Origin: Oikopleura dioica
Taxonomy: Eukaryota; Animalia; Chordata
Direction of reading: 5' to 3'
Length of the DNA: 64,000 bases
NCBI GenBank assembly: GCA_907165135.1
Contig: OU015567.1
Coordinates: forward strand, 6,634,001-6,698,000
A program made the translations under genes and the position numbers. This document shows positions 31,190 through 36,691 of the stretch, piece by piece; the first letter of the stretch is position 1; each line of letters opens with the position of its first letter. The notes beneath the pieces are model-generated. The model was not told where the DNA came from and searched no databases. It saw only the letters and a list, made by a program, of their open reading frames with translations.

Positions 31190-31427
31190 ATAGCGAATCG
31201 GACGATTGGCTTCTTACTGACCTCCTGTCTGTGCTGTAGATAAAACTTAATTTTTGAAAATAATTTGTCTCTTGAAAATATTTATCAAAACTGATCCCTG
31301 TACTGGTTGAATCCATTATTTTTACTTTGCCAATTTTGTGTTTTTAAATTATTGTAATTATAATGCTCAAGCAACTGCCCCTCTTCCGGTGCTCCAAAAA
31401 TAAATAAAAAATGATAAAAAAATGTTA

Positions 31428-31552
31428 GTCTTCCTTGATATCAATGATTTGGGATGGTAGGATGGAAAAATTTGTTTTCTAGAACGATATTTGATCAAAA
31501 ACAGTTTTCGAATTTATAATTATAATTAAGGTTTTGATTTATTGAGGTAAGT
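31428..31552 (+). promoter_or_regulatory. Promoter module repeated before all four array genes (also about 32620-32785, 33488-33624, 34490-34627)
   Basis: GTCTTCCTTGATATCAATGAT ... TTTCTAGAA ... ATAATTA(A/T)GGTTT(T/C)GAT(T/C)TATTGAGGT(A/T)AG in each copy. Confidence 0.85.
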
Positions 31553-31608
31553 TTGATATTTTTGCAGCATCTTCTGGCGAGTTTCTTGAGTTTTCAGAAT
31601 TCGCAAAG

Positions 31609-32500
31609 ATGGTCGAGACCAGAAACCAGAGTAGAGAGCGTGGCCAAATGGAGCAGTTTTTTCACAGCTTGCTCCAAACGAACCCACTGTCAAGCTTGAC
31701 GCTGAGAATCGTGCGCGACCGCTACAAGGCTGAATTCAACAAAGATCAGGACTTGTCGCCTCCCCAGTTCAAAACACTAAGATGCGTGGTGGACGAAATT
31801 GCGAAGGCGGAGATGAACAGAAAATTCAGCTCTATGGTATTTTTTCTTATTGTATTTCTATACATTATTATTCTACATTGTATTTTTCTGAATTTATGCT
31901 CTGATTTTTTGAATAATAGTGAATAAGGGTATCGACGGAATCAAACTTGAAGAAGCACGGAAAATCATCGAAGAAGAAATTGATTCAATGACGCGCAAGT
32001 TGGACGGTAAAGATGACCAGACGAGGAATAGGCTCGAATTATGTCGGAAATTGAACGACTCTTTTCGACTACTGGAGTCCAAGCTTGAGAAAAACGACGT
32101 CGAAGTAAGAAAATTATGATTATGTTTGAATCCTCGATACCTTTGATAATTAAATATACTTCAGGAGAAACAACAAATAGCCCAGTTTTTAATTGAAGCT
32201 GCAGAAAAGTTGAAAGGCATCAGAGAACGCAGAGCTCGAACCGATCGTAAAAAAGCACTGATTGAAGAAGAACTAGCCCGGGCGGAAATCGAGGAGGCGG
32301 AACTCAAACGACTTGAAACAAAGACCAAACGTCATTATTATGAGATATTTTGTATAAAGACATTTGAATGCGATCAAGATGAAGTTGCTGCTGATCAAGA
32401 AGAAGAGATTGAAAGACACTTTGCCGCAGTAATAAGAGCTAGCGAGGAGACAAACAAAATTCTCAACGACTTCGAGTCGCGATCAAAAATGTGGGAATGA
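31609..32500 (+). CDS. Array copy 1: HIRIP3-N/DEK_C-like domain plus coiled coil (3 exons, about 246 aa)
   Basis: Exons 31609-31836, 31928-32104, 32165-32500 join in frame; RERGQMEQFFHSLLQTNPLSSLTLRIVRDRY. Confidence 0.8.
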
Positions 32501-32852
32501 ACGTTCTCATTTCCTTTCCTGTTTCTGATTTTTATTAATTTTTCTTTTTCAGTTCCACTTAATTTTCTCTGCATTAAATTACGGAAAAAAAGCATCAAAA
32601 AGCAGCAAAAAATATGTGAGTCTTCCTTGATATCAATGATACATACGGTATGTAACATACCATATATCTATAACTGCCAGGAACTCCGAGAGTCGGTTAA
32701 CAAAGAGGATGAAAAATATGCTTTCTAGAATGATTTTTGGCCAAACAAGTCTCTAGGTTGAGGAGTTATAATTATGGTTTTGATTTATTGAGGTTAGTTT
32801 TATCTTCTGGCGAGATTCCTAAGTGTCTCCGATTTAAGGTCTTTCTGCAACG

Positions 32853-33447
32853 ATGGTAGACCAGAGAGAGCGCGGACAAATGGAGCGGTTTGTCCGCCAC
32901 TTGTTCCAGACGATCCCAATTGCGAGCTTGACGCAGAGAATTGTGCGCGACCGCTACAAGGCCGAATTCAGCGTAGATCAGGGATTCACGGCAAACCAGG
33001 CTGAAACACTCAGATCTATTGTAGTCGACTTCGCGAAGGCCGAGATGGACAAAGGCTTCAAACTTTCCATCATCAAGGTATTTAAGAGATTCAAAAAATT
33101 AATACAAATTCACATTAATTTACTTATTTCAGAGCCGCCTCAAAGACAAGATCCATGACCACGAGCGTGGAATAGAAGAAGATACTGAAGAATTAGCCCG
33201 CATTGAAGAAAGAAAAGCCAAGCTTGAAGAGAGAAACGCCCGCCGGAAAAAAGAACTGGCCACGATGCAGATCCTACAGCGTTTTCAAGCGGTGATTGAC
33301 CGTACTTTAGATGATGCTCCAGATTTTTCAGAGCAGATTGAAAGTCTGAGAGAACTCTCTCTGAAAAACGCGAAAGAGGTTTTCAAGATGTTCCAAGAAG
33401 ATGTTGACAGAATTTCCGACGATTTTTCCTATTTGCAGTTATATTAA
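32853..33447 (+). CDS. Array copy 2: HIRIP3-N/DEK_C-like domain plus coiled coil (about 179 aa)
   Basis: Exons 32853-33077 and 33133-33447; RERGQMERFVRHLFQTIPIASLTQRIVRDRY. Confidence 0.8.
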
Positions 33448-33677
33448 TTTTTAAAAAATAAAAAAAAATGGTTTTCAAAAACATGAGTCTTCCTTGATCT
33501 CAATGATGTTTGACGGCAGGAGAGTCTGACAGGATCAAAAAATCTGTTTTCTAGAACAATCTTTAGGAGCAATTGGTTTTTTGGTCTACAGTCGTTATAA
33601 TTAAGGTTTCGATTTATTGAGGTAAGCTCGATATTTTTGCATAACTATTTGGTAAGTTTCTCGAGTTTCTTTGAACG

Positions 33678-34305
33678 ATGGTGGAGACCAGAGAGCAGAG
33701 AAGAGTGCGCGGACAAATGGAGAACTTTGTCCGCTACTTGACGAAGATAATGCCACGGTCAAGCTTGACGCAAAAAATCCTGCGCGACTCCTTCAAGCTC
33801 ATAATATTCAAGAAGCAGATGACGGTTGCCCATTATGAAACACTAGAACGCGTATTCGTCGAGGTTTCCAAGGAAGAACCGAACAAAGACTTCCAAGATT
33901 CCGAATGGAAGGTATTTTGTCTTATTAAACATTAAATTTTTAATAAACATTCATTGATTTCAGACCCGGCTTAGAGAAACTGTCTTCAAGGTTCTCCGTC
34001 AACAACGTAAATTGGAACAGCAAAATGAAGACTTAGCCCGCCTAAATGAAGAAGTCGCCCGCAAGAAAAGAAAAGTGGCCGTGGAGAAGATGCTGCACGA
34101 CAAACTCGACCGACTCAGAGAGCAAATTGATCTTCACCTTGACCAACTTGAACGAATTATTCGTCATTATTCTTTAGCTCCTCCAGAGAAGGTCGCGACT
34201 CTAACAACACTCGCTCTGGAAAGAGTTCACGATGTTATCAAAGTACTTTGGCAGGAATTTGAAAGAATTCACGATGAGTTATCCGCTATTCCCGACGATC
34301 AGTAA
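33678..34305 (+). CDS. Array copy 3: HIRIP3-N/DEK_C-like domain plus coiled coil (about 191 aa)
   Basis: Exons 33678-33911 and 33964-34305; RVRGQMENFVRYLTKIMPRSSLTQKILRD. Confidence 0.8.
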
Positions 34306-34695
34306 TTTTAATTTTCTATCTAAAGCGACTTTTTTTATTAATAAACAGCCAACAGATTGCATTTGAAATTTTGCGTTTTTTTATTTTATCCAGAGGGTGG
34401 CGACAATCTTTTTATCCAGGGTAAAGGCCTGCTTTTATCGGTATTAATTTCGTTTTCCAGTGCTAAAATAAGAAAAAATAAAAAAATGAGTCTTCCTTGA
34501 TATCAATGATGTTTGACGGCAGGAGAGTCTGAGAGGATAAAAAAAATCTGTTTTCTAGAACAATCTTTACGAGCAATTAGTTTTTTGGTTGATCGTAATA
34601 ATTAAGGTTTTGATCTATTGAGGTAAGTTTGATTTTTTACATTATCGTATTATCGAGTATTCTTGAGTTTGTCGAATTAAGGTCTTTCCGCAACA

Positions 34696-35320
34696 ATGGT
34701 CGAGACCAGAAAGCAGAGAAGAGCGCGCAGACAAATGGAGCAATTTGTCCGCTTCTTGACAATGATAATGCCACTATCAAGTTTGACGGAGAAATCGGTG
34801 CGCGACCTGTACAAGCTCGAATCCGAGAAGCAGATCACGGATTCCCAGTCTAAAGCCTTGAGATGCATCGTCAGCAACCTTGCAAACATAAAGCACAACA
34901 AAGAATTAAGAGCTTCCAGATCCAAGGTTATTTTTTCTTGCCAACTATACCTTACTAAATTATTATTTACTTTAGACCCGGCTGAGAGAAAAAATGTTCA
35001 AGTATCTCAACAGTCAACGTGAAAAAGAACAGACAGAGAAGGAACTAACCCGCATTAAAAAAGAACTCGCCCGCGAAAAAAGAATACTGGCCGCGGAGGA
35101 GAAGCTCTTAGCAAAACTTAAAAAAGTGGAAGTTCAACTCGAACTTCACTTAGCCGAATATGAAAGGATTCCGGATCGTCCATGGATCATTGCTCCAGGA
35201 AAGATCGAGACCTTGACAGTGCTCGCTCACGATAAAGTTCTCGATGTTATGGCAAGACTAGAGCAAGAGTTTGACAGAACTCACGACCAGTTAAATGCAA
35301 TCCCCAACGATCTTTTCTGA
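34696..35320 (+). CDS. Array copy 4: HIRIP3-N/DEK_C-like domain plus coiled coil (about 191 aa)
   Basis: Exons 34696-34926 and 34976-35320; RARRQMEQFVRFLTMIMPLSSLTEKSVRDLY. Confidence 0.8.
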
Positions 35321-35480
35321 CTTTTCTTTTTCTGATCTATCAATTTTTGTTCGCATTATATTTTGAATAAACATTCAGCAAAGCGCGAAGTGTTTTTTTT
35401 CAGAATTTAGTTTGAAAATAAACTTCGAACGTTAATTGAAATTCAATTATTGAATAGTAAGATTTTATTGAAAAAAAGAG

Positions 35481-36691
35481 CTATTCCAGTGCAAGAATGA
35501 TCTGCTTTTTCGCGAGTTCTTCGATTTCCGAGTAGGTCGCAAGAGTTTCCAGATTATCGAGCATGACTCCTTCGAATGCGGAGAGTTCCATACCAGATTT
35601 GAGGCGAACGGAGAGGATCTTTCCTTTTGAACAAGTAATGATTGAATCTTCCGTTTCCAGCGTAAATTTAGGTGTTTGGCCAAAGATCCATTTCCATCTC
35701 TTCAGCTCTTCCACTCTTTCTTGAATCTCGTCAAGCTCTTCTGGATTCACTATTTCGACGTTTTCAAAATTTTCTTCATAAGTTTTGCCCCAGTTTTTCG
35801 CCAGCGAAGTCTCCAGCGCTTGATTATCGTTGATTCCAACATCAGAAAGGGTTTTCACATCGACGCGGAGGGAGCGAGTAGCACTAGTTTCGATGTCGGA
35901 GTTGGAGGTCAGAACTTGATTTAAAATTCCAACATCGGAATCAACAAGGAGAGTGCAATGATGAAGCGCTTCCAATCTCAACAATCGCGCCGCGCTGCCG
36001 GAAATCTTCCACTTTTGATCTAAAGAACAGATTTAATTCAAAATCGAGAAGCCGCACGCGGCTTCGAGTCTTGGCTGAATAAAAGCCGCGTAGCGGCCTA
36101 TTAAAAAACGATGCAGCATAGCAATAATTATATTATTATAATTATTTCGTTGCCGAGCTCAGCTTCGAATAAAAGGAAACTTCGTGCTGCTCTTTTATAT
36201 TGCTCGAAGCCGCAAGCGGCTTCTCGATTTGCAGAACTGAATCATACCTAGAATAATATCGTCCCTATCGTTTACAAAAACATTCGTCTCGGGCATCAGG
36301 CTCTTTACAGCGTCGCAAATGATTCCCAAGTTCTTCTTTCGGCTGTATTCTTTGCGAGACGTTATGAAGGACAAGTTGATATTCCCGGATCATGATAAAC
36401 AGTTCCGCCGCCAGAAACTCTTCTCGCGATGTTTATGTGGTTTTCTTTCGCAAAGGGGACGTTTATCTCCAGCCAGGGGTTTTGGAAGCGACCGATGACC
36501 ACACTCGGCCTGTTTCTCTTTTTCTAGGGTTGAAAAGAGCGCTTGAACTTGGCCGGAAAATAGCTTTAATTCAACCCTAGCCAGAGGAACAAAATAGGAC
36601 TTTGGGTAGCTCTGAATCTCTTCTGAAACAGGAACTCTTCATATGCCAAATTTGTGTAAACGCAGTTCGAAACCGATCTTACCACCGACAT
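35481..36691 (-). CDS. LIPT1: Lipoyltransferase 1 (one apparent 1-nt frameshift near 36383)
   Basis: [64 protein letters not shown]. Confidence 0.85.
36040..36235. repeat. AAGCCGC/GCGGCTT fold-back element in LIPT1 intron (relatives about 37285-37470, 38862-38965, 40777-40905)
   Basis: AATCGAGAAGCCGC ... GCGGCTTCTCGATT inverted ends with several internal mini-hairpins. Confidence 0.75.

Follow-up and report, generated by a model that had tools for sequence, protein, structure and literature searches.

We analyzed a 64,000-nt stretch of chromosome 2 of Oikopleura dioica (assembly OKI2018_I69, 64.3 Mb in 19 contigs; contig OU015567.1, positions 6,634,001 to 6,698,000), which is hereafter called the window. 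Positions 31609-35320 of the window are filled by four intact, spliced genes on the plus strand. These genes, g1, g2, g3 and g4, encode proteins of 246, 179, 191 and 191 amino acids, respectively. Each protein consists of an N-terminal DEK-C-like domain (the N-domain) and a charged tail, and the genes belong to a larger tandem family, which is related to a distant gene on the same chromosome (g7). A preliminary description, made from the letters of the DNA alone, had placed four co-oriented genes here, and the open reading frames (ORFs), splice sites and poly(A) signals confirm this. Because every intron is in phase 0, the genes could be read exon by exon, and each exon was translated and searched separately. 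The exons and the promoter-like modules ahead of them are as follows (window coordinates).

31418..31608, plus strand: promoter/5′ module of g1, with GTCTTCCTTGATATCAATGAT, TTTTCTAGAA and TATA-like ATAATTAAGG; repeat families D2, D4-D6 and D8, and seven-way alignment
31609..31836, plus strand: g1 exon 1, 76 codons, Arg-rich N-terminal tail and three-helix DEK-C-like domain; ORF, GT donor, AlphaFold 2 (AF2) models and public model CAG5111499.1
31928..32104, plus strand: g1 exon 2, 59 codons, additional helical exon; AAG/GGT acceptor kept in g5
32165..32500, plus strand: g1 exon 3, charged helical tail and stop; ATTAAA at 32573
32610..32852, plus strand: promoter/5′ module of g2; repeat families and seven-way alignment
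32853..33077, plus strand: g2 exon 1, N-domain, 75 codons; public model CAG5111500.1 and ortholog-like Tara contig L018 (75% identical)
33133..33447, plus strand: g2 exon 2, tail and stop; AATAAA at 33457
33477..33677, plus strand: promoter/5′ module of g3; repeat families and seven-way alignment
33678..33911, plus strand: g3 exon 1, N-domain, 78 codons
33964..34305, plus strand: g3 exon 2, tail with RKKRK basic cluster and stop; AATAAA at 34340
34480..34695, plus strand: promoter/5′ module of g4; repeat families and seven-way alignment
34696..34926, plus strand: g4 exon 1, N-domain, 77 codons, net charge +10
34976..35320, plus strand: g4 exon 2, tail (47% identical to the g3 tail) and stop; AATAAA at 35366

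All five introns of g1-g4 are GT-AG introns in phase 0 with lengths of 49-91 nt. In the alignment of the four genes, intron 1 occupies an identical position directly past the domain, as had been proposed. The stop codon of each gene is followed by its own AATAAA or ATTAAA at a distance of 10-73 nt. The proteins start with MVETR or MVDQR, and the exon-1 peptides of g2-g4 are 44-57% identical to that of g1, with 17 invariant columns. Exon 2 of g1 has a counterpart only in the paralog g5 (58-60% identical). The splice sites of g1 and g2 are identical in the public models CAG5111499.1 (g5802) and CAG5111500.1 (g5803), which take an internal Met as their start codon and are thereby 13 and 9 codons shorter at the 5′ end, respectively, than our versions. 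When g6 is included, the public starts lie 9-15 codons past the proposed ATG, and that ATG is conserved in five of the six array genes. We prefer the upstream ATG because the family retains both this codon and the GCAACGATG context around it, because the peptide ahead of the internal Met is conserved even in g7-type relatives, and because the first modelled helix begins at residue 5.

For copy number, g1 exon 1 and, afterwards, a profile built from 21 sequences of the domain were searched against all six frames of the whole genome. Exactly seven loci were recovered. Thus, the preliminary array of four was correct as to the four genes and too small as to the array, seven genes with the domain being present in the genome. 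Two of the additional loci, g5 and g6, are array-type genes, which are arranged head-to-tail on the minus strand outside the window, at a distance of approximately 46 kb upstream from g1 (coordinates are local to chr2 6612001-6622000).

7686-6820, minus strand: g5, three exons, including the additional middle exon of g1
6530-5912, minus strand: g6, two exons; public model g5780 with the same splice sites

The seventh locus, g7, is single-copy and lies on the same chromosome at approximately 9.911 Mb, 3.2 Mb from the array (coordinates are local to chr2 9904001-9914000).

7488-7414, 7184-7014, 6972-6604 and 6559-~6190 and onward, minus strand: exons of g7

The g7-type protein is the closest sequence relative of the array domain, g1 being 68% identical to g7 exon 2. 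In both g7 and the array genes, the domain ends with the same phase-0 intron (after …SKSK in g7 and after …SRSK in the array genes). In contrast, g7 has an extra intron, which splits the domain between …LLK and TMPLSS…, and past the common intron it reads into a Lys/Glu-rich linker and then a Cys-rich region instead of the array tail. The four-exon model of g7 is truncated: past …MHKG there is an intron, beyond which the frame runs on as in P0012, a full-length g7 relative of 1,463 amino acids obtained in the exhaustive profile search. P0012 is derived from an intronless, transcript-like Logan contig of 4.7 kb. The Pfam record of P0012 carries RIN13_N (PF27679), and an independent Atlas feature search agrees with this assignment (score 0.86, 194 shared features). 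Therefore, we take g7 to be a large RIN13_N-domain protein of approximately 1,460 amino acids, which begins with the array module (approximately 80 residues, as judged from sequence) and has a long C-terminal region. A word search with the Cys-rich part of P0012 retrieved only P0012 itself. A TAA inside the g7 match had raised the possibility of a pseudogene; this was rejected because the TAA lies within the intron.

A module of approximately 200 bp stands ahead of every array gene, although it is partial before g5, and also ahead of the gene on the Logan contig L016, which is described below. It contains the GTCTTCCTTGATATCAATGAT box, the TTTTCTAGAA box and TATA-like ATAATTAAGG, after which comes GATTTATTGAGGTAAGTT. 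The presence of a common promoter module argues for co-regulation of the array genes. We also observed that much of the coding sequence is less well conserved than the boxes of this promoter-like module, the first of which contains a tiny ATG...TGA frame.

The N-domain had been described as HIRIP3-N/DEK_C-like, with an AlphaFold and Foldseek comparison as the suggested check. DEK_C (Pfam PF08766) corresponds to residues 309-375 of DEK (PDB 1q1v), and is also found in Uaf30/Spp27, Slingshot, and plant Chz1-like and PC4 proteins. The DEK-C domain is a three-helix bundle with an auxiliary role in the binding of double-stranded DNA and RNA (PMC13088671). The AF2 model calculated on the 21-sequence alignment (predicted local distance difference test, pLDDT, 79.4) has helices at residues 5-24, 32-42 and 51-74, and an earlier AF2 model of g1 exon 1 (pLDDT 77) also has three helices. 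A three-helix bundle with the DEK-C topology and size (approximately 55-70 residues) is therefore present in the model. We then compared the AF2 model by shape with the cluster representatives of the ESM Atlas. The first row was "HIRA-interacting protein 3 isoform X2" from Chordata, with a template-modelling (TM) score of 0.76 by query and a root-mean-square deviation (rmsd) of 1.7 Å over 68 of the 76 residues. Rows 2, 3, 4, 5 and 10 of the ten were DEK_C clusters (SWIB with DEK_C twice, DEK_C alone, CHZ with DEK_C, and PC4 with DEK_C) at TM 0.65-0.73 and rmsd 1.7-2.6 Å. In Pfam, DEK_C was matched by 4 of the 21 sequences (best E 6.7e-4), all below the gathering cut-off of 24.8 bits; for example, P0016 matched at 16.9 bits in an earlier scan. 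Among solved structures, 1q1v aligned to the model with TM 0.58/0.62 and rmsd 2.3 Å, other small helical folds scored alike, and Foldseek against the PDB returned zero matches at E <= 0.001 with either model. Thus, the PDB matches are not decisive. When the genome was scanned in six frames with the DEK_C hidden Markov model (HMM), Slingshot was found (29 bits) and the array family was not, and Pfam scans of single exon peptides gave only scattered sub-threshold noise of the coiled-coil type. Across the 21 sequences, SSLT, D37 and L57 are among the domain residues that show little or no variation. Exon 1 has a net charge of +1 to +10 with an Arg-rich N-terminal tail.

Taking the predicted models together, we consider it quite probable that the domain has the DEK-C/HIRIP3-N fold. 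The earlier assignment thus stands for the fold, through the Atlas shape search, in which HIRIP3 came first, and the recurrent Pfam DEK_C matches; it is not borne out by the overall sequence statistics, and the PDB matches do not decide it. The likeness to the HIRIP3-type N-terminal helical domain is at the fold level only. Because the scores are below the cut-off, we do not assign the family to Pfam DEK_C. The array family also differs from known DEK_C proteins in two other respects. The partner of the domain is a charged helical tail, whereas the Atlas rows show SWIB, CHZ and PC4. Moreover, the array is tandemly amplified and fast-evolving, whereas the DEK-C domain of DEK is strongly conserved (PMC13088671).

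The C-terminal exons had been called divergent; BLASTP shows them to be homologous across all six array genes (1e-5 to 1e-30). The tails are approximately 105-170 amino acids long, with 37-49% charged residues and a net charge of -6 to +12. They contain a 21-nt periodic …ELAR… unit and close with a conserved helix of the form …V.DV…L..EF[DE]R…. No relative of the tail was found elsewhere in the genome, a word search of 5.8 billion proteins with the g3 tail gave no match, no Pfam family reached its cut-off, and an Atlas feature search did not recognize the tail. Derivation of the tail from g7 was rejected because BLASTP of the tails against P0012 finds no similarity. The preliminary description had also made the C-terminus a coiled coil. 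A crude heptad score of a/d positions is weakly above shuffled sequences (z = -0.4 to 2.8 against 300 shuffles), so that a coiled coil is plausible from the sequence and not established. Complex prediction for two copies of the g3 tail gave a score of 0.02, which weighs neither way on self-association.

The taxonomic range of the N-domain was examined with a HMMER profile of seven N-domains against 1.84 billion representative proteins (E <= 1e-3). There were 21 matches, one of which was a spurious Ig-repeat protein. The true matches were the public models of g1, g2 and g6, g7-type proteins, and short ORFs from Logan and ENA/Tara marine metagenome contigs, and they all look like sequences of Oikopleura or other appendicularians. 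HIRIP3, DEK or any other named DEK_C protein was absent from these matches. Because g3, g4 and g5 are missing from the profile matches and the word search with the g3 tail was empty, these three genes seem to have no public protein model. Thus, an exhaustive search found no relatives beyond a narrow lineage, the N-domain itself being common to g7. The term "orphan" used for these genes is consequently apt for the tail and the restricted range but not for the N-domain and its intron, which are common to a large RIN13_N-domain gene.

In a midpoint-rooted maximum-likelihood tree calculated from 79 columns of the domain, the array-type sequences form a single clade (95/96), next to which stand the g7-type sequences of O. 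dioica. More divergent N-domains fall outside this group and are presumably from other appendicularians. Within the array clade, g2 pairs with P0007, g3 with P0005 and g6 with P0009. These pairs indicate that the paralogs are older than the split of the sampled lineages. A further divergent copy of the N-domain, P0036, was observed on an ENA contig of 17.9 kb from a marine eukaryote (L017, 9968-10339 and 10966-11403). It adjoins a NEDD4-like HECT ligase, the N-domain copy is followed by ORFs that resemble coiled coil by eye, and nothing similar to P0012 was found on this contig. Fusion of the N-domain module to a helical tail may have happened on more than one occasion.

The preliminary description had proposed a lineage-specific, rapidly evolving family. 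The restricted profile matches agree with this, and so do Nei-Gojobori estimates of the ratio of nonsynonymous to synonymous substitution (dN/dS, omega), the measurement of which among paralogs and orthologs had been suggested. Between paralogs, dN/dS is 0.25-1.02 in exon 1 and 0.27-1.18 in the last exon. Between ortholog-like pairs it is 0.43-0.78, and the frame and intron are kept. For example, omega is 0.51 for g2 and its Tara counterpart (75% identity), and for g3 and the Logan contig L016 it is 0.43 in exon 1 (60% identity) and 0.78 in the tail (31% identity). The proportion of synonymous differences (pS) is 0.30-0.57 in exon 1 as against 0.34-0.83 in the tail. The lower pS in exon 1, together with the common promoter module, suggests gene conversion of the 5′ half, or its later spread.

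The contig L016 (Logan SRR23998815, 2153 nt) comes from another O. dioica-like lineage and is syntenic with the slot of g1. Its flank is 84-89% identical, and the alignment reaches the first approximately 115 nt of the g1 coding sequence, after which a g3-like two-exon gene follows (1475-1711 and 1756-2118). Because its start is g1-like and its remainder g3-like, the L016 gene is a mosaic, which suggests that the copies in the array recombine or undergo gene conversion with one another. As judged from these comparisons, the array is subject to birth-and-death evolution with recombination, acting on genes in which frame, introns, signals and the key residues of the domain are preserved. A g6-like copy on a Tara contig of 517 nt (L020) has an in-frame stop in exon 2, between …RRGK and LARAEK…; a second g6-like contig, L021, ends ahead of the site of this stop. 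The stop may mark a pseudogene allele or may be an error caused by low coverage.

On this basis, we propose, with a probability of roughly 0.6, that the array is a six-gene tandem family of the O. dioica species complex, in which a DEK-C-like module is joined to a family-specific tail, that it is related to g7, and that its products are putative small nuclear binders. Each protein would have a short Arg-rich N-terminal tail, a three-helix domain of approximately 65 amino acids with the DEK-C fold, and then the charged helical tail. Because the N-module and its phase-0 intron are common to both, the family probably originated by partial duplication or exon shuffling at the DNA level, which would have placed the 5′ end of g7 onto a new tail; g7 is the likely source of the module. 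The new gene would then have spread by tandem duplication along with the promoter module of approximately 200 bp, and quick evolution with recombination or gene conversion and birth-and-death turnover would have followed. Small nuclear binders would be in keeping with the positively charged exon 1, its basic N-terminal tail and the cluster in g3, which resembles a nuclear localization signal. Most likely, therefore, the module and basic tail bind nucleic acid, chromatin or a partner. Since the N-terminus of g7 is the closest relative, the most economical model is that the array proteins bind what the g7 N-terminus binds. Their target would be of the same kind, and they may modulate or compete with g7, while the helical tail may supply self-association or a second interaction.

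Several observations weigh against this proposal. No family member attains the DEK_C gathering score, and the exon-1 peptides of g1-g4 do not match Pfam DEK_C even at E 10. Profile searches of the PDB returned no DEK and nothing else of relevance. When the family profile was aligned by hhalign with the one bona fide DEK_C of the genome, that of Slingshot, E was 0.29, which is not significant, the 18 aligned columns being on the expected loop and second-helix region. The Atlas match compares a predicted model with another predicted model. The direction of transfer from g7 to the array depends on a tree of 79 columns rooted at its midpoint, and some paralog pairs have dN/dS near 1. Finally, three oligo-dT RNA-seq runs of unknown strain and with no positive control had essentially no reads on the array: in these and one single-cell run under the same species label, each run contributed 0-3 partial reads, which fell in A-rich intergenic sequence outside the coding exons, and with these limits the runs say nothing either way on expression.

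One alternative is that the N-domain has converged on the shape of DEK-C/HIRIP3-N and is a small three-helix bundle of a generic kind, be it FF-like, winged-helix-like or new; in that case the family has no informative relatives and is a true orphan. The FF domain (e.g. of FBP11 and CA150; PDB 2cqn and 2k85) is likewise a small helix bundle and gave the best Z among solved chains with the second model (6.5-6.7). However, no member matches Pfam FF even at E 10, whereas DEK_C is the only Pfam family matched by more than one member, and the match spans HMM positions 10-52 of 54. Furthermore, HIRIP3 and DEK_C clusters take six of the ten rows among millions of Atlas clusters, and with the first model 1q1v ranked 2 and the UAF chain 7z0o_G ranked 12 of 48,161 chains. 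We regard a generic bundle as rather unlikely. Another reading, which is more unlikely still, is that a fragment of promoter and exon was duplicated and that most of its copies are now in decay or in neutral drift, functionless in themselves, and open by chance or dead only recently. The dN/dS values near 1 (g2-g3, 0.97; g3-g6, 1.02; g1-g5 tail, 1.18), the RNA-seq result with the limits given above, the g6-like Tara copy with its in-frame stop and the three genes that seem to lack public models speak for such duplicates. Nevertheless, at a synonymous divergence of 0.4 to >2, the open frame (179-250 codons), the GT-AG introns in phase 0, the poly(A) signal and the promoter module are retained in all six genes. 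In addition, ortholog-like pairs elsewhere keep frame and intron under the lower ratios described above, and the key domain residues remain invariant or nearly so.

The preliminary description had suggested that the proteins might be dominant-negative competitors of HIRIP3, a chaperone of H2A-H2B, occupying the partners of its N-terminal domain. The HIRIP3 N-terminal domain is the top structural neighbour and is likewise N-terminally placed, and the array proteins lack the histone-binding part, as expected of a decoy. HIRIP3 binds H2A-H2B through its C-terminal CHZ region (residues 403-527), which is indispensable, and no role has been assigned to its N-terminal half (PMC10854748). Pfam scans found the CHZ motif (PF09649) in none of the array exon peptides, and the tails are mixed-charge helical sequence with no acidic (Glu-rich) or poly-Ser tracts. 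In this respect the initial reading, that neither an acidic region nor a CHZ domain is visible, was borne out. HIRIP3, in contrast, has Glu-rich and Ser-rich regions in addition to the C-terminal CHZ (PMC10854748), and has no significant sequence match to the array family. Because the CHZ motif is lacking, the array proteins are not HIRIP3/Chz1-type histone chaperones. In the genome as a whole, the best CHZ score is 18.6 bits, below the cut-off of 23.3 bits, and Slingshot alone exceeds the DEK_C cut-off, so that no HIRIP3 to compete with was detected. A HIRIP3 or DEK ortholog in this genome was also considered and rejected as the source of the domain. Since CHZ is absent from the family and below the cut-off genome-wide, and since g7, the RIN13_N protein, and not HIRIP3 is nearest to the domain in sequence, competition with HIRIP3 is very improbable.

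An extension of the proposed g7-related family is that the array proteins are "micro-protein" decoys, in which a truncated copy of the targeting module of g7 is joined to a self-associating tail and titrates or redirects the binding of the RIN13_N protein to nucleic acid or a partner, amplification and diversification being driven by an ongoing conflict (e.g. in the germline or with selfish DNA). This extension is unlikely as it stands. If it is true, the array would be a natural experiment in which the HIRIP3-N/DEK-C module acts as an autonomous, transferable targeting unit.

The genome of O. dioica is known for its extreme, very fast turnover. Under the proposal, a single species complex would show how a DEK-C-like module is copied out of a large gene, is fitted with a new tail and, along with its promoter, multiplies into two tandem clusters. 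This would be a clear example of how a partial duplication gives rise to a gene. The DEK-C module has been described as auxiliary and under-characterized (PMC13088671). The six paralogs and their orthologs, with 30-75% identity, provide a natural variant set for asking what the module binds.

Two other features were observed. Directly downstream of g4, at 35481-35984 of the window on the minus strand, there is a convergent ORF of 167 amino acids, which is part of a neighbouring gene. Elsewhere, two loci on different chromosomes, C4:3709354-3709464 and C1:15304845-15304955, hold ORFs that are near-identical over the first approximately 95 residues and both score 20.5 bits (sub-threshold) with DEK_C; this pair is probably a repeated element and is unrelated to the array family.

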